Shown here one piece after another: positions 767 through 57,043 of a DNA stretch of 64,000 nucleotides. Numbering within the stretch: the stretch's first letter is position 1; each line of letters begins with the position of its first letter. The position numbers and the translations under genes were made by a program. Under the pieces are notes generated by a model, which saw only the letters and a list, made by a program, of their open reading frames with translations, was not told the origin of the DNA and ran no database searches. The DNA lies in the sequence record NC_041974.1; one strand, 5' to 3'.

Positions 767-795
767 AAGGGAGGGCTTCGGCTCTCCCTTATGCC
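767..795 (+). terminator. Hairpin followed by TTATGCC motif
   Basis: AAGGGAGGGC-TTCG-GCTCTCCCTT then ATGCC; T-rich tract about 10 nt later. Confidence 0.8.
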
Positions 796-883
796 ACCCG
801 TTCTTCTTTTTTGGTTATTACTATGAATTGCAAGATTCACCACGTAGTTCGTTTCACTTATTAACCCCTAAAGAGGAATAGTC

Positions 884-2806
884 ATGACAGATAGCACTAC
901 AGCGCAGAGCCCGACCGTGACGTTAGACCAAGTCATCGCGTCAGGCGGCCAGATTGTCTTCCTGGACAATGGGCAACTGAAAAGCTTTCCTGTCTCTCAG
1001 ATCACTGACTTACTGAAAAGCGGCATGTCTACTGATGTGTTGGGTCAGGCTGATTCTCTGAGTATGTTTGGTCAGGTGGAGTCGTTCGAGGCTCTACGTA
1101 AGCTTAAGCCACAGAAAGAAGGTGCACGCATCTCTCTTCGTGGTTGGAACAAAGGCAGTTGTCTGGGTGGTGGTGAGTTCATTGGTCATCTCGTAACCAA
1201 AGAGCTTAAAGCCCGTCCAGACGATGGCGGCATGATTGCAGCCGGTAGCGGGTTCTTCTGGGAACGTGTGTGCTCAGATTGCGGGCAAATGAATGTCACT
1301 CACTTCGGTGCGCTTCCTGGCGCAACTGCAGCGACTGATTGCGTGCCAGCAATGACCGCCATGCTGAACTGGAGTAATGCCAACGCTGTTGGTTTAGGAA
1401 TTCAATTCCCAGCCGGTACTTTCTTCGCTTCCAGTTTAAAGTTCACCAAAGAGATCGGGTATTTCCGTATCGCCGGTAACCACATCAACTTTGGTTATTT
1501 TGCTAACACGGTATTGGTGAGTGACGCTACTGAAAACTTTATGTTGGATGTTGCGGCCCGTCGGGTTGAGTTGGCAAACATCATCTTCCGCGGTGTGAGT
1601 ACTACTGAGAAGCCGAATAAGAAAGGGATCTTTAATAACATCGTCATTGGTGGTCAGTACTTCAACATGACCTGTGTGCGGTTTGAGAAAATCGGCGGGA
1701 CCTGTGTTAATCTGATCGATACTCTCGATACCAAGATGACACAATGGTACGCGTCACAATGTACTGGTGATGTGATCGTTAACAAATGGTCCGATCGTCA
1801 GGCAGGTGGCTGGAACCATACCACTGCTGTTGAAATGACCAACTTTAACATCCAGAAGTGTGTTGGTGGTAAAGTGTTTGACATGCAGCGCTGCGCTCAG
1901 TCGTTTATCACTAATGGCTGGATCGAGCACTGTGATGATCCAGGCGACCTGTCTAATGGTCAATGGACGGTAAATGGCCTGAGTATCGAAGATTGTAAGA
2001 AACCATTAAAGGCCTCTTACGCTCGCTTTATTGAGATCCAGCGTAACCTGCAGTCCGGGTCACGGATCGACTACTCCATTGACCCAGAGCTCGAAGAGTG
2101 GCTGAGTGAATGGGAACGCGGTCGTCTGGATATCGCCAACCACGGCATCTTCATCGACGGTACCTTAGAGCCGGGTACGATCATGTCTCGCAACAAGCTG
2201 AGCAACAGCAGCGACAAAGCGAAATGGTTCCGGGTCGGTACCTGGTACAGCCCATCTGAAGGCGATTCCATTGACATCAACTTGGTCGGCACCGGTAACT
2301 TCCTGTCGGTCGCACCAAAGCTTGATGATATCGATGGTGTGCGTCAAGGTGGCGGTAACACCCTGATCCGTGTGCAGTTGAAGAAAGACTCCGTAGGTGC
2401 GACCTTAGAACCACATGGTTCAAGCCCCCTGCAAGCGGCGAAGATTGCCAAAGTCGGTGCCGGTAAGTTTGTGATCTACGCCCAGCTGAAACCGTATACC
2501 CGTAATGTGATCCCGGTGATTGTTGCAACCGGCGCCACGCACTACGAAGCCGGTGTCTCTTATTACTTCCGTCCGGCGATTGCCTCGATGAGTGATGAAG
2601 AGATCGCAGCAGTGCCGGATGCGGTGGTGATTGCTGAACAGTGGTCGCTCGGTCAAATGGCCGGTGTGGGTGCCACTAACGAAGGTAACCTGATGCTGAA
2701 GAGTAAGATCGTTAACGATCACTTGCAGGTACAGGTCATGGTTAGCCAAGCACAATGGGCGAAACCAGAACTTCGTTATATCGAGCTGAAGAAAGAAGCC
2801 AAGTAA
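884..2806 (+). CDS. Tailspike-fold (beta-helix) protein, AmsF/WceF-like, putative exopolysaccharide depolymerase or receptor-binding protein
   Basis: GQVESFEALRKLKP..GGGEF..DDGG..WER head motif; NVTHFGA..DCVPA..FPAGTF pectate-lyase-3-like entry; C/Q/T-rich parallel beta-helix pattern; AGAGG RBS. Confidence 0.65.
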   Translation: MTDSTTAQSPTVTLDQVIASGGQIVFLDNGQLKSFPVSQITDLLKSGMSTDVLGQADSLSMFGQVESFEALRKLKPQKEGARISLRGWNKGSCLGGGEFIGHLVTKELKARPDDGGMIAAGSGFFWERVCSDCGQMNVTHFGALPGATAATDCVPAMTAMLNWSNANAVGLGIQFPAGTFFASSLKFTKEIGYFRIAGNHINFGYFANTVLVSDATENFMLDVAARRVELANIIFRGVSTTEKPNKKGIFNNIVIGGQYFNMTCVRFEKIGGTCVNLIDTLDTKMTQWYASQCTGDVIVNKWSDRQAGGWNHTTAVEMTNFNIQKCVGGKVFDMQRCAQSFITNGWIEHCDDPGDLSNGQWTVNGLSIEDCKKPLKASYARFIEIQRNLQSGSRIDYSIDPELEEWLSEWERGRLDIANHGIFIDGTLEPGTIMSRNKLSNSSDKAKWFRVGTWYSPSEGDSIDINLVGTGNFLSVAPKLDDIDGVRQGGGNTLIRVQLKKDSVGATLEPHGSSPLQAAKIAKVGAGKFVIYAQLKPYTRNVIPVIVATGATHYEAGVSYYFRPAIASMSDEEIAAVPDAVVIAEQWSLGQMAGVGATNEGNLMLKSKIVNDHLQVQVMVSQAQWAKPELRYIELKKEAK

Positions 2807-2831
2807 GGCAAGCGCGTTATACCGCTAACTG

Positions 2832-2860
2832 GAGGAGGGGATTCCCCTCCTCTTTATGCC
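2832..2860 (+). terminator. Hairpin followed by TTTATGCC
   Basis: GAGGAGGGG-ATT-CCCCTCCTC-TTTATGCC. Confidence 0.8.
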
Positions 2861-2878
2861 GCCCTAGATTTTACCAGA

Positions 2879-2897
2879 CCTATATTACCCTTGTGAT
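2879..2897 (+). promoter_or_regulatory. Putative phage early promoter
   Basis: CCTATATTAC-cctt-GTGAT; one of 9 intergenic copies; contains the TATATTAC early consensus reported for phiKZ. Confidence 0.7.
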
Positions 2898-2980
2898 CTC
2901 TGTAGAAATAAACGGAATCACCCAGTCTTATAACCCGCTGACCAAACCGAGTGTCGGCTAAACAAAGAAGAGGAAATACC

Positions 2981-3682
2981 ATGACTACCCGTAAGATTGC
3001 TCGCTTAGACAAACTCGCTAAATTTGTAAACGACAATTTTGATCGTGATTACAACCTGCCATTTGCGATCGAGATCGAACAGCATGAAGATAAGTGGCAC
3101 GGTGTTCGATACAGCCTCAACCTGACTCAGCCAGAGTGTGACGGTAGTCCTGTAAAAACGTTATTCCGTTCGAAGATGTTACCGGCTGAATTCGTTGGTG
3201 ATCGATTTACACGGCTAGAAGGCAGTGTGGCCGGAATGGCATCTGGGATTGAACTCCTGGGACAAGTTGCCTGGTACTGGATGTTATCAGGGGTAAACGG
3301 CAGTGATCGCGAATTGGGTGTGCAGGTAGCGTCGATGGCCTGGGATGCCTGGACACTGGCAACCGCCATATTTGATGGCTCTAAAGCCCGTGATCTCTTC
3401 GAGCGTGACGATTTCCTTTGCCCTGGCGTAACACTGAATCAGCACGTCCTGTGCGAAAAGTTTGTCAGCATTGACCGCGAAGTATGGCTAAAGCGTCGCA
3501 CTAAACTGCTCGATAATGCGGTGGTTATTGAAAGTCGTTGGACCTTCGTAAAACAATATATCGGGGCAGGCGGTCTGGGTCATGAAGAGAAACACACTGT
3601 CGCCGAGGTCACCAAACGCAGGCAAGTACCCGCGCCTTTTGAAATTATCTTTAAGGCCAAATCGTCTCCTTTTAATCCATGA
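2981..3682 (+). CDS. Hypothetical protein
   Basis: AGAGGA RBS before ATG 2981; first gene after promoter motif. Confidence 0.8.
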   Translation: MTTRKIARLDKLAKFVNDNFDRDYNLPFAIEIEQHEDKWHGVRYSLNLTQPECDGSPVKTLFRSKMLPAEFVGDRFTRLEGSVAGMASGIELLGQVAWYWMLSGVNGSDRELGVQVASMAWDAWTLATAIFDGSKARDLFERDDFLCPGVTLNQHVLCEKFVSIDREVWLKRRTKLLDNAVVIESRWTFVKQYIGAGGLGHEEKHTVAEVTKRRQVPAPFEIIFKAKSSPFNP

Positions 3683-3686
3683 GAAT

Positions 3687-3709
3687 GAGGAGGGGGTTTC
3701 GACCTCCTC
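3687..3709 (+). terminator. Terminator-like hairpin
   Basis: GAGGAGG-loop-CCTCCTC directly after stop. Confidence 0.55.
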
Positions 3710-3744
3710 CAATATTGCTATTTTAAGTTGCAGAAAATCTAACG

Positions 3745-3763
3745 CCTACATTACTAATGGGAT
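3745..3763 (+). promoter_or_regulatory. Putative phage early promoter
   Basis: CCTACATTAC-taat-GGGAT. Confidence 0.65.
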
Positions 3764-3799
3764 AGGCCTGATCAACAATTCTAATTAAGGGAATTTGTA

Positions 3800-4270
3800 A
3801 TGAGTGAAATCACGTTTAAAGACGCGCGGTATTACGACCTGATTACCAAAGAACAATTGCAACCTGGACACACCATCCTGCTGAGCCTCAAAGGTCAACC
3901 AGCGGGTGTCATGACCCCAGCAGTACAGTGGGCTAAAGACAACCTGGAAAACACGGTCGTGGTGTACGGCACGGTTGACGATCTGCAATCAATCCATAAA
4001 GAGATCAGTACTTGCGATCAACCGGTAGCTGTGGTCCTTACCGGCGGCTACCACGCAACGTATGAACTTACTCACTGGGCACGGGAAAACAACGTAGTGG
4101 TGTTCCTGGCTTCAGATACCAATGCACCGCGTCCACGTTATGCGGTACTGCTCGGTACCTGTCTGATCCAGCTGACTTATGACCAGACTGGTCGAGTGAG
4201 TTCTGCTACCGCCATTCGTAATCAAGCAACCGCATCAGGCTGGGTGATCGACTTCACCGCTGACGCATAA
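3800..4270 (+). CDS. Hypothetical protein (alpha/beta pattern)
   Basis: AAGGG RBS; 156 aa ORF. Confidence 0.75.
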   Translation: MSEITFKDARYYDLITKEQLQPGHTILLSLKGQPAGVMTPAVQWAKDNLENTVVVYGTVDDLQSIHKEISTCDQPVAVVLTGGYHATYELTHWARENNVVVFLASDTNAPRPRYAVLLGTCLIQLTYDQTGRVSSATAIRNQATASGWVIDFTADA

Positions 4271-4309
4271 TCCTTTATTCATCCAATTAATTTAACCTGA
4301 GGTAATATC

Positions 4310-4915
4310 ATGCAACTTCATCAATACGTCGCCCTCTTACTCGGTGTGGGTTTAATCACGATCATTCTCGTTATGCTGGTCGGTTGGCTCGTGCTTGAAA
4401 ACCAACGCAAATACGCCGCATTCCAACGGGTGCGTTACGAAAACATGCTGCGCTATCGCCTGACTGATTTCAGCAACCAGGTGACGGCAGATCTCTCAGC
4501 CATGTTCCTGCGCTATTTACTCTCCCCGCGGGTTGGTGGTACTGAGCGGGTGAGTGTAGAGGCAATAGCCGGTACCGTCCAGGGTATGCTGCAAGCGATC
4601 GCTGCTCACCACAACCATGAGTTTAAAAGCTCAGAGGTCGGTGATACGTTACTGGGTCTGTTGATTAAAGAGGTCTCTTATGAAACACAGAGCGACCGCA
4701 TCATCTTTACCTTGACACGTCCAGGTGCCACGAACCTCACTTATACCCTGACACACCCCGAAGCGTACGGTTCGATGCTCTGCTGTGAGCTGGAAGACTA
4801 TCGCATGCGTCTGCGTGACCGCGCAACCCTGCAGATCAAGCGTGAGTTCGATCAGGTACCGCAAACGTATAAAGCCGCCTTCCCTAACTCGGAGCGGATT
4901 AACACAACCGCGTAA
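4310..4915 (+). CDS. Hypothetical protein with N-terminal transmembrane anchor
   Basis: GAGG RBS; YVALLLGVGLITIILVMLVGWLVL. Confidence 0.8.
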   Translation: MQLHQYVALLLGVGLITIILVMLVGWLVLENQRKYAAFQRVRYENMLRYRLTDFSNQVTADLSAMFLRYLLSPRVGGTERVSVEAIAGTVQGMLQAIAAHHNHEFKSSEVGDTLLGLLIKEVSYETQSDRIIFTLTRPGATNLTYTLTHPEAYGSMLCCELEDYRMRLRDRATLQIKREFDQVPQTYKAAFPNSERINTTA

Positions 4916-4920
4916 TAAAT

Positions 4921-4947
4921 GGGAGGCCTTGCCTCCCTTTATTTTTT
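4921..4947 (+). terminator. Intrinsic terminator
   Basis: GGGAGGC-CTT-GCCTCCC plus T tract. Confidence 0.75.
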
Positions 4948-5014
4948 GTCATTGTAGTAAATGTGTACAACTTAACTAAATCATTTAGTAAACGTAAAAA
5001 GGAAAGTCAGCATC

Positions 5015-5311
5015 ATGTCAAACGAAGCCATTCTGAAAGCCCTGGAAACCATTGCCACCACATACCCAAAAGTTGAGGTGGTGTCGATTGGTGGGATTAT
5101 CGCCTGCTTCGGCACGATGAAAGATGGGAAGGTAGAAACCACGGTGTTTGGTAATCTGCCCGAGTTCACTGTCGCCAATGTGAAGAAGCTTTACAACGCG
5201 AAGTGGTCACAACGTCAATTGGGTTATATGTACGGTACATCACAGGCCCAGATCGCTAACTTCATGAAGAACCGTGAGGTTAACGTTCCCAATACGGTAA
5301 AAGGTTATTAG
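5015..5311 (+). CDS. Small protein with probable C-terminal helix-turn-helix
   Basis: WSQRQLGYMYGTSQAQIANFM resembles an HTH. Confidence 0.6.
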   Translation: MSNEAILKALETIATTYPKVEVVSIGGIIACFGTMKDGKVETTVFGNLPEFTVANVKKLYNAKWSQRQLGYMYGTSQAQIANFMKNREVNVPNTVKGY

Positions 5312-5312
5312 C

Positions 5313-5603
5313 ATGAAATGGTACGAACGACTGGTCGAGAGCACGGTGCTGCGGTTTATGGCAACCTTCCTCTTAGCCTGCTTGTGGTCCCTGCTCCTTT
5401 TAAGCCAATGCTCGTTAGCGCTCGATCTCACCTTAAGCGTGATCTCTCTGGTGATCGTGTATAACCTGCGGGATTTCTTAAAGGACCTGCACCACGGTGT
5501 TTCAACCCGTCATGACTTCGCAGGCTGGTTTGTGCTGAACGCTGCTGGTATGGCATTGCTCTCGGCAATCATTAACGCCCTGTTCATCTTACATAGACTC
5601 TAG
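5313..5603 (+). CDS. Small multi-pass membrane protein
   Basis: Three hydrophobic segments; WFVLNAAG motif. Confidence 0.75.
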   Translation: MKWYERLVESTVLRFMATFLLACLWSLLLLSQCSLALDLTLSVISLVIVYNLRDFLKDLHHGVSTRHDFAGWFVLNAAGMALLSAIINALFILHRL

Positions 5604-5611
5604 GAGCTCTC

Positions 5612-6193
5612 ATGTCAAAGAAACTCGATACCCGTAAAAGTATGTTCCTGGCCTTGGTGTTACGCCACCGTCCTGAGGAGATCGGAATTACCCTGGATGA
5701 GAACGGCTGGGCTAAAGTCAGCGAAGTGATCACCGGGTTTACCTTTACCGGGCGTGGGCTCTCATTACCTGAGCTTGAGATCATCGTTGAGACGGATGAG
5801 AAGAAGCGTTACCAGCTCTCTGACGATAAGTGCTATATCCGCGCTGTGCAGGGGCATTCTCACGAAAGCGTGATGAACATGCAGCTGGAAGTGGCGACAC
5901 CGCCAAAGTACTTGTATCACGGCACCCAACAGATCTCCTGTGAGTCGATCGAGCGACAAGGGATCTTGCGCCTTAAACGTTTATATGTCCACCTAACGGA
6001 TGACATCGAAGCGGCTTGGCGCGCAGCAACTCGTAAACGAACAGCCGGTGCAGTCTACCGAATCGACACCGAGAAGATGACGCGGATGGGCCATGTGTTC
6101 TATCGCGCTGAGAACGGGGTTTGGCTGGCGAAGCGCATTCCTTTCTCAGTCATTGAGATGGTTGATGCACATGACGAAGAAACAAGTACCTGA
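5612..6193 (+). CDS. kptA: RNA 2'-phosphotransferase, KptA/Tpt1 family
   Basis: VLRHRP, KKRY, IRAVQGHS, LYHGT and RLYVHL motifs; Arg-His-Arg-Arg catalytic set present. Confidence 0.93.
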   Translation: MSKKLDTRKSMFLALVLRHRPEEIGITLDENGWAKVSEVITGFTFTGRGLSLPELEIIVETDEKKRYQLSDDKCYIRAVQGHSHESVMNMQLEVATPPKYLYHGTQQISCESIERQGILRLKRLYVHLTDDIEAAWRAATRKRTAGAVYRIDTEKMTRMGHVFYRAENGVWLAKRIPFSVIEMVDAHDEETST

Positions 6194-6455
6194 GTGGTGG
6201 CACGTCCCCATGTTACCCATTGGGTTCATGATGATTTGGGTAGGATATGTAATAGGTGGGCAGTTCCTCAGTTTCTGGGGGTGTATCTGTGTCACGTTGA
6301 TTTGTGGTGGGGTTTCGTACCAGCACTGCATGCGCTCAACCAAGTATCGCAAAAATTCCGTAAGCTGGTTTATCTGTTGGAATGCTTACGGTATCATCGC
6401 GTGTTTGGGTATTGGGTTTATGGTAGCGGCAATTTATCTAGGCGGAGTCAAATAA
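6171..6455 (+). CDS. Small multi-pass membrane protein
   Basis: Three hydrophobic segments; WFICWNAYG motif; start reassigned to ATG 6171. Confidence 0.65.
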   Translation: MTKKQVPEWWHVPMLPIGFMMIWVGYVIGGQFLSFWGCICVTLICGGVSYQHCMRSTKYRKNSVSWFICWNAYGIIACLGIGFMVAAIYLGGVK

Positions 6456-6728
6456 GTGAAAAGTAAAACAGGCAGTAAGTTAACACGCACGTTGTTGTTT
6501 TGTTTTGGTGCTTACATCACGGGGATGTTTGCCTTGATGATGATCCTGTCATCACAAAGCACTGCAGGCATCACTGCAGGGAACTATGACAAAATGAGCG
6601 TGGATGACTCGCCTGAGTTTATTTTAACAGATCGCAGTAATGGATGTAGATACGTCTATGACTCGGTTACCAAAACAGCCCACACTGCAACAGGCTTCGA
6701 TTACTGCCTGTCGCTAAGGAAAGAATAA
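6456..6728 (+). CDS. Signal-anchored small protein
   Basis: GGAG RBS; N-terminal hydrophobic helix; LTDRSNGCRY and a second Cys near the C-terminus. Confidence 0.7.
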   Translation: MKSKTGSKLTRTLLFCFGAYITGMFALMMILSSQSTAGITAGNYDKMSVDDSPEFILTDRSNGCRYVYDSVTKTAHTATGFDYCLSLRKE

Positions 6729-6800
6729 TGGTTCGTGCTTATCGACACTCTGAGCTGCTACGATGGCCGCATCCCGCGGCCTGCACCCGGAGTTCGTTCT

Positions 6801-7028
6801 ATGTCTATTGCAGTCAACCGTCATCACGCTAAACGTTTAAAGGCCAAACGTAAACATTACTGGAACGTCGGCGGGAAACGCCAGAACAACAAGGCGGTGG
6901 GAATTATCTTCCATACCCCGTGCAAATGCAGCTGCACTATGTGCGGTAACCAACGCAAGCATTGGGGTCGCCCGATCCAGGAAGTGAAACAAGCGGCCCG
7001 TTTTAGTGATACGGTCACTGACATTTAA
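6801..7028 (+). CDS. Small basic Cys-rich protein, possibly Zn-binding
   Basis: GGAG RBS before ATG 6801; CKCSCTMCGNQRK. Confidence 0.65.
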   Translation: MSIAVNRHHAKRLKAKRKHYWNVGGKRQNNKAVGIIFHTPCKCSCTMCGNQRKHWGRPIQEVKQAARFSDTVTDI

Positions 7029-7076
7029 CCATGCAAGGGGGGTTGTTGGCTCCCCTTCTTTATTTGAGGAATCCGC

Positions 7077-7442
7077 ATGAAACGCGGCTACCCATCAGGC
7101 CAACCGATTGAAGTCGAAGTCGGTGGAGTCATGTACCAATTTAACCCCCTTGAAAACATGCTGGCTGATCTGCGTGCCAATAAGTTGATCATCGTGTGTT
7201 GTAGTAATAAGAAGCGCGCCATTACCGATATCTGGATGTGCGATGCCGAGATCGACTACTCGACGCAGTCACGCATGGAACACATCCTGGTCAGTGATCG
7301 TTGCAAGCAGTTCACCAAAGACTACGCCTTAACGCGAGTAGTGGATGTTGATAGCCGGTCATTGACGATAGCCGGTCCAGATAAAAAGATGCTGTCGATG
7401 GTGATTATGGGGGATACCCTCTACGCCGTTAAGCCAAGTTAA
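7077..7442 (+). CDS. Hypothetical protein
   Basis: GAGGA RBS; 121 aa. Confidence 0.75.
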   Translation: MKRGYPSGQPIEVEVGGVMYQFNPLENMLADLRANKLIIVCCSNKKRAITDIWMCDAEIDYSTQSRMEHILVSDRCKQFTKDYALTRVVDVDSRSLTIAGPDKKMLSMVIMGDTLYAVKPS

Positions 7443-7465
7443 CAGAACAGCGGTTGGGTGCCTCT

Positions 7466-7567
7466 ATGAACAATGTTTGGCTTTTAGTAATGGCCCTTAT
7501 TTATACAGCAGGGCTTATTGCCGCATGTGTGGTTGCACGCATGGCAGTCTTTCATCATGTGATCTAA
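7466..7567 (+). CDS. Small membrane peptide, 33 aa (not in ORF track)
   Basis: MNNVWLLVMALIYTAGLIAACVVARMAVFHHVI fills the gap between flanking genes. Confidence 0.5.
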   Translation: MNNVWLLVMALIYTAGLIAACVVARMAVFHHVI

Positions 7568-7576
7568 AGGGCAATT

Positions 7577-7855
7577 ATGAGTAAAGGTACTTTGAAAGGC
7601 CTTGGTGTGGTGTTGGCGTGTCTTGTGATTGGCGTATTGCTGTTTGTTTTTGCAACCGCTGTTCAAGCTGCCGATACACCCGTTAACCCCCACTGTGTTG
7701 CCATTACTAACGACAGTACAATTACCACCCAGTGTGACGACGGTACCGTGGTCATTACCAACACCGCAACCTCGACGGTGATGGTGTGTCATGTAAGTAA
7801 AGAAACAAAAGGTCTTCCGCAATGCGTGAAAGACCGGGTTGTCATTTCTAATTAA
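7577..7855 (+). CDS. Predicted secreted Cys-containing small protein
   Basis: Signal peptide ending AVQA; four Cys in the mature part. Confidence 0.7.
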
Positions 7856-7878
7856 CGTTATTCTTCGGAGCTACACAC

Positions 7879-9971: not shown

Positions 9972-9978
9972 CTGCCAG

Positions 9979-13681: not shown

Positions 13682-13723
13682 ACCCGGGGGTTCTCCCCGG
13701 GTTTTATGCCGTCTTTTTTTTTT
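13682..13723 (+). terminator. Hairpin, TTTATGCC, then T10
   Basis: ACCCGGGG-GTTCT-CCCCGGGT-TTTATGCCGTC-T10. Confidence 0.8.
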
Positions 13724-16479: not shown

Positions 16480-16498
16480 CCTACATTACCTAAGGGAT
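16480..16498 (+). promoter_or_regulatory. Putative phage early promoter overlapping a hairpin
   Basis: CCTACATTAC-ctaa-GGGAT. Confidence 0.55.
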
Positions 16499-16522
16499 AG
16501 TGAAAGCTATCCCTTTTATGCC
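16492..16522 (+). terminator. Hairpin followed by TTATGCC
   Basis: AAGGGATAG-TGAAAG-CTATCCCTT-TTATGCC. Confidence 0.7.
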
Positions 16523-16543
16523 AATTATAATTGAGGAGTAAAA

Positions 16544-19066: not shown

Positions 19067-19237
19067 TAATTAAATACTAGACAGTGTAATCATATACGTA
19101 AAGGGGTCTGGTGAAAGCCATATCCCTTTTGGTTATGCTGTCTTTTTTTTTTTGGTTAAGAAATACTAGCCTTCTCCATTATATGCAATTTACACGATAC
19201 ACTTTTCTATTTATTACATCAGCAAGAGAGATAAGAC

Positions 19238-19734: not shown

Positions 19735-19741
19735 TCATACG

Positions 19742-19767
19742 GGGAGGCTTCGGCCTCCCTTTATGCC
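19742..19767 (+). terminator. Hairpin followed by TTTATGCC
   Basis: GGGAGGC-TTCG-GCCTCCC-TTTATGCC. Confidence 0.8.
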
Positions 19768-19811
19768 GGTCGTTATCCTATGACTTGTATTTGGCAGGTC
19801 TGAGGTGACGT

Positions 19812-20431: not shown

Positions 20432-20460
20432 GGGGCGGGATTTCCTGCCCCTTTTATGCC
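20432..20460 (+). terminator. Hairpin followed by TTTTATGCC
   Basis: GGGGCGGG-ATTT-CCTGCCCC-TTTTATGCC. Confidence 0.8.
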
Positions 20461-20501
20461 GATTATCCTATAACTGACTTACATCATTAAAGGGTTTTAC
20501 C

Positions 20502-21467: not shown

Positions 21468-21476
21468 TCGCTACGA

Positions 21477-21506
21477 GGGGAGGGATAACACCTCCCCTTT
21501 TATGCC
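21477..21506 (+). terminator. Hairpin followed by TTTTATGCC
   Basis: GGGGAGG-GATAACA-CCTCCCC-TTTTATGCC. Confidence 0.8.
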
Positions 21507-21551
21507 GGACGAGGAATCGTATAGGTGCTTTTGCCAACGAGGAATCTTATC

Positions 21552-23710: not shown

Positions 23711-23737
23711 GCCAGGGTTTGTCCCTGGCTTTATGCC
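23711..23737 (+). terminator. Hairpin followed by TTTATGCC
   Basis: GCCAGGG-TTTGT-CCCTGGC-TTTATGCC. Confidence 0.8.
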
Positions 23738-23754
23738 GCCCAAAGTATCTCAGT

Positions 23755-33776: not shown

Positions 33777-33781
33777 TAGAC

Positions 33782-33832
33782 GGCATAAGAGGAGGAGCAA
33801 ACGCTCCTCCTCTGTTTATGCTGCTTTTTTTT
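33782..33832. terminator. Bidirectional terminator with TTATGCY on both strands
   Basis: GGCATAA-GAGGAGGAGC-AAAC-GCTCCTCCTCT-GTTTATGCTGC-T8 between convergent genes. Confidence 0.85.
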
Positions 33833-41096: not shown

Positions 41097-41125
41097 AGGC
41101 CAGGTGCAAACCTGGCCTTTATGCC
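41097..41125 (+). terminator. Hairpin followed by TTATGCC
   Basis: AGGCCAGG-TGCAAA-CCTGGCCT-TTATGCC. Confidence 0.8.
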
Positions 41126-41178
41126 GGCCTGGGAATGGTACCCGTTATGCCACTATCAATTAACCAAAATGTAGAAAT

Positions 41179-43715: not shown

Positions 43716-43718
43716 GCC

Positions 43719-43746
43719 GGCATAAGGGGCAGGGTTTCCCCCGCCC
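43719..43746 (-). terminator. Hairpin followed by TTATGCC on the minus strand
   Basis: Reverse complement GGGCGGGG-GAAA-CCCTGCCC-C-TTATGCC. Confidence 0.7.
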
Positions 43747-47805: not shown

Positions 47806-48162
47806 GTGACCACGTTATTCGCCGGTGCACCAACCAAGCTTCCGATGATGGACCTGTCTGCGATCATTGATCCAGATAAGGATATCGAGTCTCGGCTTAA
47901 ACGGAAACTGTTATTAACTTTCGTTTGTCATTGTCGTCGTCCTCGTGCGAGTGCAGATGAGCTTAACCGCACACATGCACTATGCGAGGACTCGGCAGAC
48001 GTTGAGCAGTGTCTTGATTACATCTCGCGCATGGGTCCTGAGTTCAGTGAAGCTTACGATGGTGTTGATCTTGAATGTGTGATGGATATCATCGGGCGTA
48101 CGCCTGAATGGCTCCGTTACGGATCTGCTATTGAAATGTGGACAGACCTCAAGCAGTTGTAG
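47806..48162 (+). CDS. Hypothetical protein
   Basis: AAGGGTG RBS; GTG start. Confidence 0.7.
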   Translation: MTTLFAGAPTKLPMMDLSAIIDPDKDIESRLKRKLLLTFVCHCRRPRASADELNRTHALCEDSADVEQCLDYISRMGPEFSEAYDGVDLECVMDIIGRTPEWLRYGSAIEMWTDLKQL

Positions 48163-48214
48163 GGCATAAGAGGAGGGCTCACGCCCTCCTCTACTTTATG
48201 CTGCTTTTTTTTTT
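48163..48214. terminator. Bidirectional terminator with TTATGCY on both strands
   Basis: GGCATAA-GAGGAGGGC-TCAC-GCCCTCCTCT-ACTTTATGCTGC-T10. Confidence 0.85.
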
Positions 48215-49010: not shown

Positions 49011-49091
49011 ATGTACTCCGTGAGATAAAAGTAATCTGTTACATAAGATGACTTATTATGAAGGTATTATTAATTAAAAGGACCGCACACA

Positions 49092-50477: not shown

Positions 50478-50491
50478 GTGTACCCACTGTG

Positions 50492-50520
50492 GGAGAGGGT
50501 TATCCCTCTCCTTCTTATAC
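50492..50520 (+). terminator. Hairpin with variant TTATACC motif
   Basis: GGAGAGGG-TTAT-CCCTCTCC-TTCTTATACCG. Confidence 0.7.
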
Positions 50521-50557
50521 CGTCAGTAGAGGGAAATAAGCTAATAGGAAGCAGTAT

Positions 50558-50977
50558 ATGCTTAACAAAGAAATACGCATTGTCGTTGCGTCGACTAAAG
50601 GTTTCAACGACGCAGAGCGTTTAAAACTGACTATTGACGGCCTCCTGGAAGATATCTACTACCTCAACGAAGGGGTAGGTGATGAGGACGAGGAGTTGAT
50701 CACTGATGCCAAGATCGTTTTCATCACCAATGGCGAACACAAAACAGCGGCTGAGTTGCTGCCTGGTGTGTTGGGTGATCGGAACATCGACATCGAAGTG
50801 ATCAAGGTTGATTGGTCAAAAGGTAAGAAAGCGTTTTTTGATAACTGCGCTGTATTGGGTGCGAAGTCGACCCACGGCGTCATTTTTACGGACAGCAAAG
50901 ATGACGGGATGCAGACACTGCTGAAAGCATGTCTCGATGCCGGCTCACGCGTTCGTACTTATAGCTCTGCTATTTGA
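50558..50977 (+). CDS. Divergent SLOG (YspA-like) domain protein
   Basis: IVVASTKGFND..IVFITNG..IKVDWSKGKKAFFDN..VIFTD..GMQTLL pattern parallels the YspA SLOG motifs. Confidence 0.6.
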   Translation: MLNKEIRIVVASTKGFNDAERLKLTIDGLLEDIYYLNEGVGDEDEELITDAKIVFITNGEHKTAAELLPGVLGDRNIDIEVIKVDWSKGKKAFFDNCAVLGAKSTHGVIFTDSKDDGMQTLLKACLDAGSRVRTYSSAI

Positions 50978-50991
50978 GAAAGGTAACCCCC

Positions 50992-51438
50992 ATGATAACC
51001 TCAGAAGCTCACGTTAGTATACTTGACGTTAATGTCACCCACGTTATATGCACAGTTAATTGCGAAGGGCATATGGGTCGTGGCATAGCCTTGTATCTGC
51101 GTAAGTGTATTCCGGGGCTATATGAGCGGTATAAACACCTGTGCAGTTTAGGGATCATCACGGTAGACAAACTCTGGATCTACCCATCACACCCCCGTCA
51201 GATTCTCTGCTTTCCAACCAAAGATAAAACCTGGGAAGACAGCAAGCTTGAATGGATCGAAGCCAATCTCATAAAGCTTCGTGACAACTACAAAACAAAA
51301 GGCATTGTCTCTGTGGCGATGCCTCCTCTTGGATGTGGAAACGGTAACCTAAAGTGGGATGAGGTGCGGAGCCTCATTTATGCCATCTTGGGTGATTGTG
51401 ACCTTGAAGTCCACATCTGTTTAGGTAAACCGAAGTGA
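50992..51438 (+). CDS. Macrodomain protein, DarG/Poa1p-like
   Basis: TVNCEGHMGRGIA, CFPTK (DarG catalytic Lys position) and SVAMPPLGCGNGNLKW; AAAGG RBS before ATG 50992. Confidence 0.88.
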   Translation: MITSEAHVSILDVNVTHVICTVNCEGHMGRGIALYLRKCIPGLYERYKHLCSLGIITVDKLWIYPSHPRQILCFPTKDKTWEDSKLEWIEANLIKLRDNYKTKGIVSVAMPPLGCGNGNLKWDEVRSLIYAILGDCDLEVHICLGKPK

Positions 51439-51467
51439 GGGAAACACCCTGAATAGGAGCCAGTATT

Positions 51468-52349
51468 ATGTCTGATAACGCACGCGTTTTACCCGATCCA
51501 CGCGAAGATGGCAAGACGCACATCAACGTCTATAGCCGTGGCGCTTCCTGGCTAGGACAGCAACTTTCTAATATGTCCTACTACGACTTCGCACATCCAC
51601 GCTACGGCGTGTTCGCCTCGTTGGAGGGCTTCTGGTATTGGTTGTCTACGGGCAAGCAACACGAGGAGTTACGGAAGCTTGCCGGGGTCAAAGCGAAAAT
51701 GACCGGCCGGGAGTTCGAGACGATCCCAAATGAAAACTTTGAAGAAGAGTTCAAAGAAGCCATGCGTCTGCGTCTGGAGCAACACCCGATCATCGCCAAT
51801 GCCCTGGCTGAATCGTTACTGCCGTTAAAGCACTACTATTGTTACGGCGGGAAAGTGATCGACTTGTATGACCGCCACAAATGGCAAATGGACTTCTACG
51901 AGGAGTGGCGTAAAGCCAATGCCCCCGAAGACACCACCTTGGTATTGTTGATCTCTGGCTCACGTAAAGAGAAAGACTACGACGCCTTTAAGCACATCGT
52001 GATGACCTACCTGCAACCGTATATCGACAAGATAAAGGACACGTACAAAATCACCCTGCTTTCGGGGCTCGCCTGGGAAGGTCCCGATGACATGGCAATT
52101 CGTCTGTGTCGGGAAGAAGGCTTCATGTTGATTGGTCTGCCGGCGAAGTGGAAAGAGCAAGGCAAAGCCGCGGGCATGATCCGCAATGGTGCCATGGGGC
52201 GGTTGTGTAACAAGGCTTTGGTGTTCTGGGATGGTGAGTCACCGGGGACAAAAGGGATGATTGATTACCTGAAGAAAAATACTATAGACCATCTTGTGTA
52301 TTTACACGGTAAACATGAACCTGACTGGAAAGCCCCGGAGACATCATGA
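51468..52349 (+). CDS. NADAR (T4 gp30.3-like) domain fused to a SLOG/YspA domain
   Basis: N-half LSNM..F..G.FASLEGF, G..AK..GR, QH..ANAL..LKH; C-half LISGSRK, LSGLAWEGPD, PAKW..GKAAGMIRNG and FWDGESPGTKGMI. Confidence 0.78.
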   Translation: MSDNARVLPDPREDGKTHINVYSRGASWLGQQLSNMSYYDFAHPRYGVFASLEGFWYWLSTGKQHEELRKLAGVKAKMTGREFETIPNENFEEEFKEAMRLRLEQHPIIANALAESLLPLKHYYCYGGKVIDLYDRHKWQMDFYEEWRKANAPEDTTLVLLISGSRKEKDYDAFKHIVMTYLQPYIDKIKDTYKITLLSGLAWEGPDDMAIRLCREEGFMLIGLPAKWKEQGKAAGMIRNGAMGRLCNKALVFWDGESPGTKGMIDYLKKNTIDHLVYLHGKHEPDWKAPETS

Positions 52350-53020
52350 CCCCAGCACGCGAACAGACCCAGCAATTTGTGATCGAGGCTATTGCTGAGA
52401 TTCTACCCGGTTCTAAGAACCGGGATATCTATATCGACTTCTTCTCGCGGTTGAGCGATGAGGCGTTTGATGCCCTGATGCAGCGGATGGATGAAGACCA
52501 GGAGATCTTCCCCTTCTACCATCCGAACTTTACCGGTACGGTAATTGATGTTGAACGTGTGATCAAGTTAATTGAAAAGCACGGCGACACCATCATGGAG
52601 CAGCTCTGGGATATCGACCCGGAAACCGGACTGCAGTACCTGACCCCGTTGAAGTATCCGGTGCTGTTACTTCCGCTGCGTATTCAGCAGCAGAAGCTGC
52701 AGAAGAAGATGTCGATTCCAAAAGACAACAACCACATCGACGATCTGACTAACCAGCCCACCACCGAATCCAAAGGGGCTTCCTTGTCTTACCCGGAAGT
52801 GCAGATCATCTATGCCATGGGTGGCGACAAGATCCTGGAAGAGACCATGAAGGTTCGTGGTGGTGATGAGAAGGCGTTTCGTGATTACAATAACGAAATC
52901 ATTGCAAGCGGCGGTGTCACCATTGGTGCAATCAGCAGCAGCAAGACCAAGGTGAAGTCCACCAAAACCGTGCAAGTGATTCTTGAGGCCATGCACCTGA
53001 GCAACAACCTGGCCAGTTAA
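52346..53020 (+). CDS. Virion RNA polymerase beta subunit, C-terminal fragment (phiKZ gp149-like)
   Basis: KYPVLLLPLRIQQQKLQKK..IDDLTNQP..KGASLSYPEVQIIYAMG..EETMKVRGGD aligns with the RpoB C-terminal GQRFGEME..QEMLTVKSDD region. Confidence 0.85.
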   Translation: MTPAREQTQQFVIEAIAEILPGSKNRDIYIDFFSRLSDEAFDALMQRMDEDQEIFPFYHPNFTGTVIDVERVIKLIEKHGDTIMEQLWDIDPETGLQYLTPLKYPVLLLPLRIQQQKLQKKMSIPKDNNHIDDLTNQPTTESKGASLSYPEVQIIYAMGGDKILEETMKVRGGDEKAFRDYNNEIIASGGVTIGAISSSKTKVKSTKTVQVILEAMHLSNNLAS

Positions 53021-53029
53021 GGATGCAAC

Positions 53030-53590
53030 ATGAGTAGCTTGATAAACAACCTGACCGGTAAAAACAAAGTTGAGTTCAGCCCGATTGATCTTGACAGTGA
53101 AGTCGAGCGGGTTGTCTCTGAGTATGTCGGTACATACTTACGCAACCGTATCTTTCTGGCAGCACAATCGAAGATACCGGTGAATGAAGACCCAGGGTAT
53201 CTGCAGATTGTAAACTTCTTGGCTTTGGTGAACATGGAGTTCAACCATATGCGCATGTGGTCTACGTCCGACATGACCAATACCGTCTGGCCGCAGATCG
53301 TTGAAGATGAGTATGTGTTGCGCTTTGTGTTTAAAGGCACTACCCATGTCAGTGTGCGGTGCTTTGATGGCGATGTGCCCTTTCAGAAACTGGTCGACCA
53401 TGTGGCCGGTTCTCTAAGCTGTATGTCACACGGCGGAAATGAAATCATCGCAGCAGCGTTAACCCAGGTCCTGCCACGCAATGACGAACTGGTTGAGCTC
53501 TTTACCGGTAACCAGTGGTCGTTGTTCATTTATTACCTGACGCGCATTAACATCATTGAGATTGTGACCAATTCGGGAGGTAGTGTATAA
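53030..53590 (+). CDS. Hypothetical protein (core region)
   Basis: AAGGA RBS. Confidence 0.8.
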   Translation: MSSLINNLTGKNKVEFSPIDLDSEVERVVSEYVGTYLRNRIFLAAQSKIPVNEDPGYLQIVNFLALVNMEFNHMRMWSTSDMTNTVWPQIVEDEYVLRFVFKGTTHVSVRCFDGDVPFQKLVDHVAGSLSCMSHGGNEIIAAALTQVLPRNDELVELFTGNQWSLFIYYLTRINIIEIVTNSGGSV

Positions 53591-54318
53591 TGGTGGGCGG
53601 TGATCGTATTGGGTGTTACGTCCCCCTGGATGCTTTGTTGGATACCCGTATCGGGGTCATTGATCAAGTGGCCGGGGAAGTAGGATTGGAGTTGGTTAAG
53701 TCATGGTACCATACTCGCACGGCTGATCGCTTTGACCGAAAAGGCACACCGTTGACGCAGGCGGCATATCAGGCAGCCTGGGCCGCCCGCAGTGAAGAGA
53801 CCTTAAAGCGTACACGCATGACCTTTGTGCCGATGTACCTGATGAACCTGATCAGTCGCTTTAACACCTCACACGGCATGCCGATCATGGCCGCAACCTA
53901 CAACATCACGGTGAACACGTATCCGTATCGGTTATCCGATGAGCGCAAAGAGCAGCTGCAGAAGATCATCGAAACGTACACGTCAGGCATTGCTGAAATC
54001 ACCATTGACTATATCAGTCCAGCAGACCTGACTGTCGAGTACGTGAAGGCGAACTACTCCGTGTGCATCATGTATGAGTTTGATGAGTGGTTGATGTTGC
54101 ATAAAGACGAGTTCAGCCAGACCCAGATGCCCGGGACCGTAATCCTGGCACCTAAGTTGTATCTGGCGGATGTGGGGGAAGATGTGATTAAGCGGGCAGA
54201 GCAGACCGATGGCTTTGCAGGCCTGAGCCTGGCACTCTGTGCATTGGTGACAGTGGTGTTCCTGGATGTAAGGTTGTTCTCTTATGTCACAGACACACCA
54301 CCGAATCTGGATGAGTGA
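53590..54318 (+). CDS. Hypothetical protein (core region)
   Basis: GGAGG RBS; YVPLDALLDTRIG. Confidence 0.8.
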   Translation: MVGGDRIGCYVPLDALLDTRIGVIDQVAGEVGLELVKSWYHTRTADRFDRKGTPLTQAAYQAAWAARSEETLKRTRMTFVPMYLMNLISRFNTSHGMPIMAATYNITVNTYPYRLSDERKEQLQKIIETYTSGIAEITIDYISPADLTVEYVKANYSVCIMYEFDEWLMLHKDEFSQTQMPGTVILAPKLYLADVGEDVIKRAEQTDGFAGLSLALCALVTVVFLDVRLFSYVTDTPPNLDE

Positions 54319-54777
54319 TTACTTCTTTTCGCCGCCTGGGTTCATGATATCATCGTACTCGATGTGCTCACTGCCTTGACGGGTCTCACCTGCTTTAAAC
54401 TCCGGGACCGGTAACTGACTGGCATCCGGGGTTGGAGCAGGGACGGCGGCAATCGAGGTGTCTGCGCCTTCACCACGCAGGGCAAAACCACCGGCAGCCA
54501 ACACTTGCTTAACTGCACCGATGATAACAGCACCTTGCGCTTCGTCGTTCTCTTGGGCTTTCTGCTCAAGGTCAAGACGTTGACGGTTAATGATTGATTT
54601 GTCGATATCGCCCATCGCGGTCAGGGCGATCTTCAGCATCTTCGGGTCTTGTCGGGAGGCCTTGATGGGAGCACCGGACTCAGAGTCCTTCTCATCAAGG
54701 ATATCTTCGACAATCCCTAACCGTCGCATTTGCATACGACGCATCAAGGCCGCATCGTCTAATTCATAATCAGCCAT
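54319..54777 (-). CDS. Hypothetical protein (core region)
   Basis: GGAGG RBS before ATG 54777. Confidence 0.75.
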   Translation of the reverse strand: MADYELDDAALMRRMQMRRLGIVEDILDEKDSESGAPIKASRQDPKMLKIALTAMGDIDKSIINRQRLDLEQKAQENDEAQGAVIIGAVKQVLAAGGFALRGEGADTSIAAVPAPTPDASQLPVPEFKAGETRQGSEHIEYDDIMNPGGEKK

Positions 54778-54799
54778 GAGGCCTCCAGAATAATTCACA

Positions 54800-54818
54800 C
54801 CTACATTATCTAGGTGAT
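54800..54818 (+). promoter_or_regulatory. Putative phage early promoter (variant)
   Basis: CCTACATTAT-ctag-GTGAT. Confidence 0.6.
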
Positions 54819-54842
54819 CGTAGTGTATTAAAAGGAATCGTT

Positions 54843-55373
54843 ATGCGCTTTTTTAAAAAGCTTGCACTCAAACGATGCATGGCGATGTTGCGTGATGCGA
54901 AGCACGATACCTTCACCGCGCAAGAAAGCATGAACGTTCTACATGTGCTTGATACCGTGATTTCCACGGACGGCATCATAAAATATTTCGATGTTCGGGT
55001 TTCGCTCTCCATATTGATGGAAACACAACTCCCCAATGCGATGGCGATGCTGGACTTGATCACCGAAATAAACAAACACATTCAAAAGGATTTGGATGCC
55101 ACGTTACCGGATCACGGGACACTATTTGCTGAGTTTCGTGATCTGCGAGTCTTAAGCTTATATGACTGGTTATCTGATAGCGCGGGTCGAGTAGTAGATG
55201 CACCACACTTTTACCAACTGTTCATTGATCAGTTGAACCAATTAATTACCGTTATAGTGAACTGTGAAGACCAGGCAACCCAACAGTATTATCTGCGTAG
55301 ATTGCAACCGCTCTACAACGAATTACTGGGAACAGTGTATGCGGCGTTACACTGCGGAATGCTGAGTCTCTAA
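54843..55373 (+). CDS. Hypothetical protein
   Basis: AAGGA RBS. Confidence 0.8.
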   Translation: MRFFKKLALKRCMAMLRDAKHDTFTAQESMNVLHVLDTVISTDGIIKYFDVRVSLSILMETQLPNAMAMLDLITEINKHIQKDLDATLPDHGTLFAEFRDLRVLSLYDWLSDSAGRVVDAPHFYQLFIDQLNQLITVIVNCEDQATQQYYLRRLQPLYNELLGTVYAALHCGMLSL

Positions 55374-55384
55374 GGAGTTATCAG

Positions 55385-55849
55385 GTGTCTGACAAGAAAA
55401 AACCAAGGGATCAATTGACGGAGATGTTAACCGATCCGACAAAGCGGTCACGGCAGACCGCGCATCCGTTGGTGAGGCTCTGGCGACAATTCATGGCACG
55501 GGAGCTCATCACTCCTTCCAAATGGGGTGCCTTGATTGCCGAGCACATCACTCGATTGCGACAATACAAAGAAATGGATGTCCAGGCTGTTGGTACCGAA
55601 CGGGGTAATTTAAAGAAAGCGTTTATTGAAAAGAACACCATGTCTTTTTCGGCGTTTCAACGTGGCTTACGTTTCCTGGGTTTTGCCAAGGTCACGATCA
55701 TCGTCATTGCAGAGCGACCTAATGGTGAGAAGGTTGAAGAGCGTGTCGAGATTGAATTAATTAAGCGTATGTTTACAGCAGGAACACCGCCAGCCACACC
55801 GCCAACAGAGAAAGATAAACCCGATTCTGATAAACCGCCTGAGAAGTAA
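55385..55849 (+). CDS. Hypothetical protein, possibly HTH-like
   Basis: AAGGAG RBS; GTG start; MSFSAFQRGLRFLG. Confidence 0.75.
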   Translation: MSDKKKPRDQLTEMLTDPTKRSRQTAHPLVRLWRQFMARELITPSKWGALIAEHITRLRQYKEMDVQAVGTERGNLKKAFIEKNTMSFSAFQRGLRFLGFAKVTIIVIAERPNGEKVEERVEIELIKRMFTAGTPPATPPTEKDKPDSDKPPEK

Positions 55850-55865
55850 AGACGATACTATAGAA

Positions 55866-55906
55866 GATGGGACTTCGGTCCCATCGCTATTCCCTTCTTT
55901 TTTTTT
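55866..55906 (+). terminator. Hairpin with displaced T tract
   Basis: GATGGGAC-TTCG-GTCCCATC then T9 about 12 nt later. Confidence 0.65.
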
Positions 55907-55920
55907 GTTGAGGTTTGATC

Positions 55921-56991
55921 ATGGCTGGAGTGGATATTGGGCAATCGATTCAAAACTCGATTAAGGCAGCAGGTTCAGTAACAACCAACGCCGTGAACAA
56001 AGTTCAATCAACTTTTGTCGGAGGCGTGAAAGAAGACCTGGCATTAATCGATGCCAAAGCGAAGTCAGCGGTACAAACCCTGAACTCGTTTAAAGATACC
56101 CAGATTGGTGCTATCGATGGCTTTATTAAGAAAGTCTCCGGGGGTGCGCTCAGCATCTCTGAACTCTCGAGCATCATCGATGTACGTAATGGCATCAGCA
56201 TTGACTACCAGCGCCTCTATCGTCGCTTAGGGGACGCGGCGGGTTTCCCGATGGATTCAATCATTGGGATGACGGCTGATCTTAAAATGGAAGTGGCGAA
56301 TCTCCTTGATGCCTATTCCAGCAAGAACTACACCTACCTGCTTAATAAAGCCGGGGTGAAGATCGGGGTCAATGACTCGAGCTATCAAGCGGCACAGTTG
56401 ATTGCTGGTGTGATCAGTAAGATGTCCAAGTCGGACTCTGACTTTAATACCATGGTGGATGAAGCAGCGCAACTGGCGTTGTTAAATGTCATGGTGCGTA
56501 ATGCGGTGCAGGTCGGACTCTGGTCGGGGATTGATACCTTACTGGGTCAGTACACCGATAAAGCAGCTGGGATCACCAATCTGGCGACCTGTGCCCAGAT
56601 CTCAATTCGGGGTGGGGATGTCTTTACCACCAAGTACATCATTGACACCGTCGGGATTGCGCGGGTCACTGCACTGAACACCGATTTCCTGACTGACATG
56701 TTGCGTTACTTTAAGTTCAAGAGTGATGTGACTGCGGACCAGTACGCGAACTACCTGGCGACGTTGACTTACTGTTTACAGCAGGCCGAAGCGGATTGGG
56801 CGTATATGCAGTTCGGTACAGTGCGGGCATTACGGTTAAAGCCGTTCACCAATGCATCTACCGATGCAATTACCTTGTTTCAGCATACTGACGAATACCG
56901 TCAACACGTCATGATTGCCCGGACTTATCCACCTCGTGATCTGATGGATTTACTGAAACAGAATTACCCGTACATGGCTGTCGTGCAATAA
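55921..56991 (+). CDS. Putative virion structural protein
   Basis: GAGG RBS; 356 aa; next to the tail module. Confidence 0.6.
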   Translation: MAGVDIGQSIQNSIKAAGSVTTNAVNKVQSTFVGGVKEDLALIDAKAKSAVQTLNSFKDTQIGAIDGFIKKVSGGALSISELSSIIDVRNGISIDYQRLYRRLGDAAGFPMDSIIGMTADLKMEVANLLDAYSSKNYTYLLNKAGVKIGVNDSSYQAAQLIAGVISKMSKSDSDFNTMVDEAAQLALLNVMVRNAVQVGLWSGIDTLLGQYTDKAAGITNLATCAQISIRGGDVFTTKYIIDTVGIARVTALNTDFLTDMLRYFKFKSDVTADQYANYLATLTYCLQQAEADWAYMQFGTVRALRLKPFTNASTDAITLFQHTDEYRQHVMIARTYPPRDLMDLLKQNYPYMAVVQ

Positions 56992-56994
56992 CCA

Positions 56995-57043
56995 ACATAA
57001 GGAGAGGGCGTTTGCCCTCTCCTCTATGCCGTCTTTTTTTTTT
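56995..57043. terminator. Bidirectional terminator with TATGCC motif
   Basis: ACATA-AGGAGAGGGC-GTTT-GCCCTCTCCT-CTATGCCGTC-T10. Confidence 0.8.

Follow-up and report, generated by a model that had tools for sequence, protein, structure and literature searches.

Hairpin-TATGC elements at gene ends of Erwinia jumbo phage Simmy50 are probable transcription terminators of the phiKZ type

Introduction

In a stretch of 64,000 nucleotides from the genome of Erwinia phage vB_EamM_Simmy50 (record NC_041974.1, bases 62001-126000; hereafter the window), GC-rich hairpins followed directly by the word TTATGCCG or a close variant recur behind genes. The closest described counterparts of this element are transcription terminators of the phages phiKZ and 201phi2-1. 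The transcript ends of phiKZ have been mapped by Oxford Nanopore Technologies (ONT)-cappable-seq, which gave a terminator consensus of a stem-loop running into ...GGBYTTATKYYGT and 61 terminator regions, with six that are bidirectional between convergent genes, and ARNold classifies most phiKZ copies of the motif as intrinsic terminators (Putzeys et al. 2024, microLife, PMC10914365). Motif A of 201phi2-1 (n=59) is the same motif, and in uninfected Pseudomonas chlororaphis reporter expression is stopped by eight chosen terminators of that phage, whose motif content is mixed (PMC11512511). The earlier note on this DNA, made from the sequence alone, left it open whether related phages were known to have the element, and these two studies answer the question in the affirmative; for Ea35-70-like phages, our literature search found no description of it.

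The word TATG within the tail of these terminators is also known from the other end of phiKZ transcripts. The phiKZ late promoter is TATG with the G as position +1 (Yakunina et al. 2015), and a 2026 structure shows a pocket of GP123, a beta-like subunit of the phiKZ non-virion RNA polymerase (nvRNAP), holding this word in the non-template strand. Since phiKZ late promoters are reported to have TATG at the start site, the earlier note had listed a restart site among the possible meanings of the element, next to a terminator for the phage RNA polymerases (RNAPs) and an RNA processing or stability signal.

Here we argue that the hairpin-TTATGCCG elements are the main transcription terminators of Simmy50, i.e., RNA 3'-end-forming signals of the phiKZ type, a reading to which we assign a probability of roughly 0.85. 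The Simmy50 element is an Agricanvirus member of a published terminator family, and its novelty is modest. What is new are the genome-wide statistics for Simmy50, the selection that orthologous sites reveal on the tail, the reversed polarity of the stem, the division of chimallivirus terminators into two classes, and a re-analysis of published coordinates showing that hairpin-TATG sites of phiKZ end transcripts and do not start them.

Results

The element in the window and across the Simmy50 genome

Simmy50 belongs to the genus Agricanvirus and has a genome of 271,088 bp with a GC content of 50% (37% in phiKZ); RAY, Ea35-70, Deimos-Minion, and others are 96-98% identical to it over the 5-kb piece of the window that was compared. 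A nuclear shell protein, the tubulin PhuZ, and seven RNAP beta-subunit fragments are annotated in its record, which marks Simmy50 as a phiKZ-like, nucleus-forming jumbo phage with multisubunit RNAPs of its own; together with an ortholog of GP123 (see below), this annotation places it among chimalliviruses with both a virion and a non-virion enzyme. For genome-wide counts, the sequence was assembled from six annotated stretches of the public record, and gene positions were taken from a simple call based on open reading frames that reproduced the RefSeq table with few errors.

The window contains 27 copies of TTATGCY compared with 13.8 +/- 3.7 in shuffles, and inspection of the flanks revealed a GC-rich hairpin directly 5' of 16 of the 27 as well as of the CTATGCC at 57024. 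A strict composite (a perfect stem of at least 7 pairs, then TATG[CT] within 0-6 nt) occurs 15 times, while 100 dinucleotide-preserving shuffles gave a mean of 0.34 and a maximum of 3. All positions at which the earlier note had reported a strand-specific hairpin followed by TT(T)ATGC(C/T) were confirmed, and its two looser cases fold as it had claimed, the one at 19133 with a bulged stem and the one at 50514 as a G-to-A variant. An Rfam search of the window matched no family. Besides these two cases, 16 hairpin sites with TATG[CT] were tabulated (12 on the plus and 4 on the minus strand), so that the predicted terminators in window coordinates are the following:

767..796, plus strand: after gp78; 10-bp stem, TTCG loop, (T)TATGCCA, and a loose T run further downstream; the T of TATG is 27 nt past the stop codon
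2831..2861, plus strand: after gp79 (exopolysaccharide (EPS) depolymerase); stem of 10, loop of 3, TTATGCCG; promoter-like word CTATATTAC 20 nt downstream
13682..13711, plus strand: after gp101; stem of 9, TTTATGCCGTC, then T10
16492..16523, plus strand: after gp105 (MazG-like); stem of 10, TTTATGCCA
19100..19139 (motif at 19133), plus strand: looser case after gp110; bulged hairpin, UUGGUUAUGCUGUC (UUGGUUAUGCUG), then a T run; minimum free energy -16 kcal/mol, z -2.85
19741..19768, plus strand: after gp112; stem of 8, TTCG loop, TTATGCCG
20432..20461, plus strand: after gp113; stem of 8, TTTTATGCCG
21475..21507, plus strand: after gp114; stem of 9, loop of 7, TTTATGCCG
23711..23738, plus strand: after gp117; stem of 7, TTTATGCCG; CTACATTAC 20 nt downstream
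33781..33823, both strands (plus 33788-33823, minus 33781-33813): two-faced, between convergent gp132 (plus) and gp133 (minus); one 11-bp stem; TTATGCTGC and T8 on the plus strand, TTATGCCGT on the minus strand
41097..41126, plus strand: after gp140; stem of 9, TTTATGCCG
43718..43746, minus strand: after gp147 at a convergent junction; stem of 8, CTTATGCCG
48162..48203, both strands (plus 48169-48203, minus 48162-48192): two-faced, between convergent gp151 (plus) and gp152 (minus); TTATGCTGC and T10 on the plus strand, TTATGCCC on the minus strand
50491..50522 (motif at 50514), plus strand: variant after gp153 (UvsX-like); 9-bp stem, TCTTATACCG, with G changed to A in the TATG word (UCUUAUACCG, TTATACCG)
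56993..57031, both strands (plus 57000-57031, CTATGCCG; minus 56993-57024, TATGTTGG): two-faced, between convergent gp163 (plus) and gp164 (minus); CTATGCCGTC and T10 on the plus strand, TTATGTTGG on the minus strand

The whole genome holds about 60 hairpin-TATG sites. Behind its 215 strong hairpins, the most enriched 5-mers are TTATG (57 vs 1.5 expected) and TATGC (55 vs 1.4), which is the genome-wide enrichment that the earlier note had set as a test of its observation. The position logo of 81 sites reads stem-T(0.90)-T-A-T-G(0.78)-C(0.75)-C(0.68)-G(0.59), a form of the stem-loop with TTAT-K-Y-Y-G-T known from phiKZ, and TTATGCCGT is a literal instance of TTATKYYGT. Among the ca. 118 gene ends of Simmy50 with a hairpin of any kind, 55 carry TATG[CT], ca. 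6 have near variants (TTATACCG, TTATTACCG, TGTGCCG), and ca. 10 have a T-rich tail, so that the TATG[CT] tail is the dominant terminator-like class at gene ends of this phage. Between 13000 and 24500 of the window, a generic scan for hairpins with a T-rich tail found 0 of 7 sites, and canonical terminator-like and sigma-70-like sites were not above shuffles in the same interval; the lack of such an excess fits a host-independent transcription programme.

Separately, a minority of gene-end hairpins are followed by TTTATTTTTT, i.e., TTAT with a T run and no GCCG (window 4921-4950, equal to record 66921, as well as record 58795 and 214476), and tails of this type bridge the TTATG class and canonical terminators.

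Position and orientation at gene ends

All 51 high-confidence sites of Simmy50 are intergenic and lie behind a co-oriented gene, with the T of TATG 27-75 nt past the stop codon, which means that the hairpin begins a few bases after the stop. The next start codon on the same strand follows at a distance of 1-476 nt, mostly less than 180 nt, and this spacing is unconstrained. At about 25 sites, the gene downstream is convergent and its 3' end is 5-49 nt away. Two-faced elements number 11-12 in the genome, mostly at convergent junctions and with the tail on both strands; in the window, the pairs at 33782/33816, 48163/48196, and 56999/57025 bear out what the earlier note had said of convergent genes. 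Placement at gene ends, orientation with the upstream gene, and a bidirectional form between convergent genes are thus shared with the phiKZ terminators. No copy is present in the 17 divergent intergenic spacers of Simmy50, though each of these must hold promoters. The elements stand behind early-looking and late structural genes alike.

Two terminator faces are antisense within plus-strand gene arrays and have no minus-strand gene upstream (record 11336 and 270171, both minus strand). They would stop antisense read-through; among mapped terminators, antisense ones make up 9% when six phages are pooled (PMC10914365).

The element also touches gene annotation outside the window. The RefSeq starts of gp52, gp58, and gp64 (L001:45344, L001:48828, and L002:2345, the last equal to record 52345) are the ATG inside a tail that reads TTATGCCG or its C variant, which gives N-termini of the form MP... 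Each of the three genes has an in-frame ATG 6-17 codons downstream that is preceded by a Shine-Dalgarno-like sequence, and the annotated starts are probably artefacts of the terminator motif.

Published transcript ends and starts of phiKZ

Coordinates from the supplement of the bioRxiv version of the phiKZ study were compared with the phiKZ genome, which they fit; the comparison took in 118 rows of transcription termination sites (TTS) and 123 of 149 transcription start sites (TSS), leaving out P005-P007 and P127-P149. A hairpin with TTAT is present at 56 of the 118 TTS, and these lie 2-8 nt past the stem or 0-6 nt from the first T of TAT. This puts the RNA end inside UUAUG(YY) or immediately past it, at the distance expected for hairpin-driven release.

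Starts show a different picture. None of the 57 phiKZ hairpin-TATG sites within the range of the TSS list has a TSS within 0-6 nt, and a strong hairpin lies no more than 8 nt upstream of just one of 51 TATG-type TSS (P049, which uses a second TATG right after that of the terminator). The nearest starts downstream of phiKZ terminators are separate promoters 24-60 nt away. Promoters and terminators of phiKZ have a four-letter word in common and are separate populations.

Relatives and terminator classes

The words behind hairpins were scanned in ten further chimallivirus genomes. TTATG ranks first or nearly so in phiKZ (62 of 251 hairpins), pEa_SNUABM_48 (45 of 224), Klebsiella phage Eowyn (54 of 284), Goslar (12 of 136), and RSL2 (15 of 312), and Vibrio phage pVp-JHP1101 is mixed with 9 TTATG and 18 TTATT. 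In SEGD1 (SPN3US-like), Huxley, CR5, and PCH45, TTATG has only 1-3 matches each, and hairpins are instead followed by TTATT, CTTTT, or TTTTT. Judged by these tails, chimalliviruses have at least two styles of terminator, one with TTATG and one with TTATT or T-rich tails that is closer to the canonical form.

Among the first five genomes searched, enrichment of the exact octamer TTATGCCG is limited to pEa_SNUABM_48 (57 vs 17 in the control), the nearest relative, and there is none in phiKZ, SEGD1, or RSL2; Eowyn, which was added later, has the GCCG tail too. On this distribution, the GCCG part is lineage-restricted. At orthologous gene ends of pEa_SNUABM_48, whose proteins are 27-73% identical, [TC]TATG[CT] is kept in 27 of 29 cases, directly behind a hairpin in about 22, while the stems have no sequence similarity to those of Simmy50. 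The remark of the earlier note that stems differ and the motif is fixed extends to orthologous ends: selection acts on the tail and leaves the sequence of the stem free.

T runs and promoter-like words behind the element

A run of at least six T follows 11 of the 51 high-confidence sites and is missing from the other 40, so the T run is not needed for the element. Its start is usually 7-9 nt past the first T of TATG (range 5-17) and hence ca. 10 nt past the stem, in agreement with the non-canonical layout that the earlier note had pointed out. The register is nearly fixed as TATGCYGY-T(8-11), and the runs are found on the plus strand only, at both co-directional and convergent junctions:

Window 13712-13723, 33824-33831, 48204-48213, and 57032-57043, plus strand: T runs, with a further copy in the record at L001:6048-6061

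A canonical U tract would lie closer to the stem, and a promoter-like word does not consistently follow these runs.

The word CTAYATTAY occurs seven times in the window compared with 1.2 expected (2880, 3746, 16481, 23756, 27460, 36884, and 54801, all on the plus strand). Genome-wide it has 23 copies, likewise confined to the plus strand; they are mostly intergenic, preceded by AT-rich DNA and followed by a gene start at 36-105 nt, and the word resembles the early-promoter core of phiKZ (..TCTATATTAC..) in the phiKZ TSS table. In several cases (window 2880 and 23756), a TTATGCCG terminator precedes the word by ca. 20-25 nt, which gives terminator-then-promoter modules. A second common word, TTATCCTAT(G/A)AC, lies 8-15 nt behind two neighbouring terminators (window 19775-19786 and 20463-20476), and the similar words CCTATAAGTC and GCTATGAC lie behind two minus-strand terminators elsewhere in the Simmy50 genome. 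These words may be TATG-type promoters placed just past a stop, as at P049 and P075 of phiKZ.

Discussion

The position of the elements at gene ends, their match to a published motif, and the 3' ends mapped in phiKZ all argue for the terminator that the earlier note had proposed. They may serve the phage polymerases in particular, as it had further suggested; the eight 201phi2-1 terminators, though, also work in an uninfected host. That RNA ends at the Simmy50 elements is something we infer from the phiKZ and 201phi2-1 data.

A U at position -1 with a G at +1 is the universal elemental-pause signature of multisubunit RNAPs. In the mechanism that we propose, a GC-rich RNA hairpin would form a few bases after the stop codon and be followed directly by U-UAU-G-C-C-G. 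The short UUAU would take the place of the usual long U tract and provide a weak RNA:DNA hybrid just behind the hairpin, while the conserved G and the GC-rich CCG would sit at or just ahead of the release point. Speculatively, the polymerase might pause there with a pyrimidine at the RNA 3' end, G as the incoming nucleotide, and DNA ahead that is hard to melt, until the hairpin frees the transcript with an end within or just after UUAUG(CC). Since the stem is palindromic, a tail on both strands would make a two-way stop between convergent genes.

Several points weigh against this interpretation. RNA 3' ends of Simmy50 are placed at these sites by homology, and ONT 3' ends look alike whether the polymerase terminated or the RNA was trimmed back as far as a protective hairpin. 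Even in phiKZ, a mapped TTS is found at only 30 of 66 hairpin-TATG sites. The element is also no simple copy of its phiKZ counterpart, given that the 5' arm has a mean purine fraction of 0.82 in Simmy50 compared with 0.30 in phiKZ and 0.27 in Goslar. Finally, neither the T run in fixed register at 11 of 51 sites nor the role of the conserved GCCG is accounted for.

The blindness of 3'-end maps to the origin of an end leaves some room for an RNA processing or stability element, in which transcription reads through, a nuclease of host or phage cuts at the hairpin or trims back to it, and UUAUGCCG is the recognition or protection sequence that leaves processed ends for the mapping to detect. The spread of phiKZ ends over 2-8 nt past the stem could result from such trimming, a conserved single-stranded tail would suit a sequence-specific RNA-binding protein or nuclease, and Simmy50 encodes a ribonuclease, gp150. 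We nevertheless consider this explanation unlikely: the terminators of 201phi2-1 lower downstream reporter expression in uninfected cells, so that no phage factor is needed, most phiKZ copies are intrinsic terminators in the eyes of ARNold, and a purely protective hairpin would need no conserved tail.

Less probable still is a terminate-and-restart module in which the TATG behind the hairpin acts as a late promoter of the non-virion RNAP with its G as +1. The identity of the word with the phiKZ late promoter that GP123 binds speaks for it, as do P049 and P075, which start on a second TATG 9-12 nt past a terminator TTAT. However, the absence of mapped starts from all 57 phiKZ sites and the single hairpin among 51 TATG-type starts speak against it, and so do the ca. 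25 Simmy50 sites that face the 3' end of a gene on the opposite strand, the unconstrained distance to the next start, and the empty divergent spacers. Moreover, the terminator tail has conserved letters, i.e., a T before TATG and CCG after it, that late promoters lack; the restart site of the earlier note is therefore not upheld. A palindrome that has nothing to do with transcription and binds a protein at the DNA level, for instance in replication, packaging, or nucleoid organisation, would explain why a conserved palindromic repeat family is dispersed over intergenic DNA. We reject this idea, which has next to no chance of being right, because the tail is specific to a strand and its orientation matches that of the upstream gene at every one of the 51 high-confidence sites, a signature of the transcript level; the short fixed distance past stop codons and the free variation of stems behind which only the tail is fixed point the same way.

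Within the terminator reading, the TATG word itself invites a more specific and rather doubtful proposal. The non-template pocket of a GP123-type subunit, which sets the late start site, might capture TATG behind the hairpin during elongation and hold the enzyme on a transcript ending in U with G as the next nucleotide, so that a pause encoded by the polymerase would replace the long U tract. Simmy50 gp2 is the GP123 ortholog (tblastn 1e-48), and its pocket is largely preserved: F151 and H331 are identical, H185Y, Y399H, and Y406F keep all five stacking positions aromatic, and S144, K158, S334, and Q466 are kept. Across 11 genomes, the comparison of pocket residues with terminator class amounts to about two independent contrasts, which point in opposite directions: the SPN3US-like clade with TTATT (SEGD1, Huxley, CR5) fits the proposal in having changed S144, K158, H185, and S334, and PCH45 with its T-rich tails does not fit, as it keeps them. 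A k-mer search upstream of genes with terminators masked showed no enrichment of TATG even in phiKZ, where the word is known to act, and is therefore without power. The presence of terminators behind early-looking as well as late genes implies that the virion RNAP presumably stops there too, which a model specific to GP123 does not explain. If the proposal were true, one four-letter word would be a start signal without a hairpin and a stop signal with one, and the split between TTATG and TTATT or T-rich classes would reflect changes of the polymerase.

Reading the elements as terminators provides a rule for locating the main class of transcript ends in Simmy50, i.e., ca. 60 transcription-unit boundaries that generic terminator finders miss, and flags three annotated start codons as ATG inside a terminator tail. 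Conservation of the hairpin-TTATG tail extends over chimalliviruses of Pseudomonas, Erwinia, Klebsiella, Escherichia, and Ralstonia, while the tails of SPN3US-like phages, CR5, and PCH45 are TTATT or T-rich. The two classes form a natural comparison set for studying how phage polymerases without sigma factor terminate and why a stop signal includes the promoter word, and the question of termination is directly testable with the phiKZ nvRNAP in vitro system.

Among known systems, the class II signal of T7 RNA polymerase (ATCTGTT) is similar in that a short conserved word instead of a long U tract helps to stop a phage polymerase, but it needs no hairpin, acts on a single-subunit enzyme, and has no sequence similarity to the Simmy50 element, so that the likeness is one of analogy only. 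Canonical intrinsic terminators share the stable GC-rich hairpin close behind the stop codon with U residues directly past the stem; unlike them, Simmy50 has no U-rich tract of ca. 7-9 nt at this place and only U-UAU followed by GCCG (tail UUAUGCCG). The phiKZ late promoter has the same TATG on the non-template strand, and Simmy50 has a GP123 ortholog, whereas the Simmy50 sites lie after genes and not before them, often face convergent genes, and have additional conserved letters in their flanks.

By far the closest match are the terminators of phiKZ and 201phi2-1. Differences from phiKZ are the sharper tail of Simmy50 with GCCG in place of KYYG, its Erwinia host, and the reversed polarity of the stem, whose 5' arm is GGAGG-like in Simmy50 and CCYCC in phiKZ. 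The published phiKZ stem composition CCYCCCC...GGGRRGG with its pyrimidine 5' arm is accordingly not found in Simmy50, a feature that is probably not functional because stems vary freely between relatives. Shared with both phages are a GC-rich stem-loop that runs directly into TTAT-K-Y-Y-G-(T) just past gene ends, a two-faced form between convergent genes, dozens of copies per genome, and a phage that brings its own multisubunit RNAPs.

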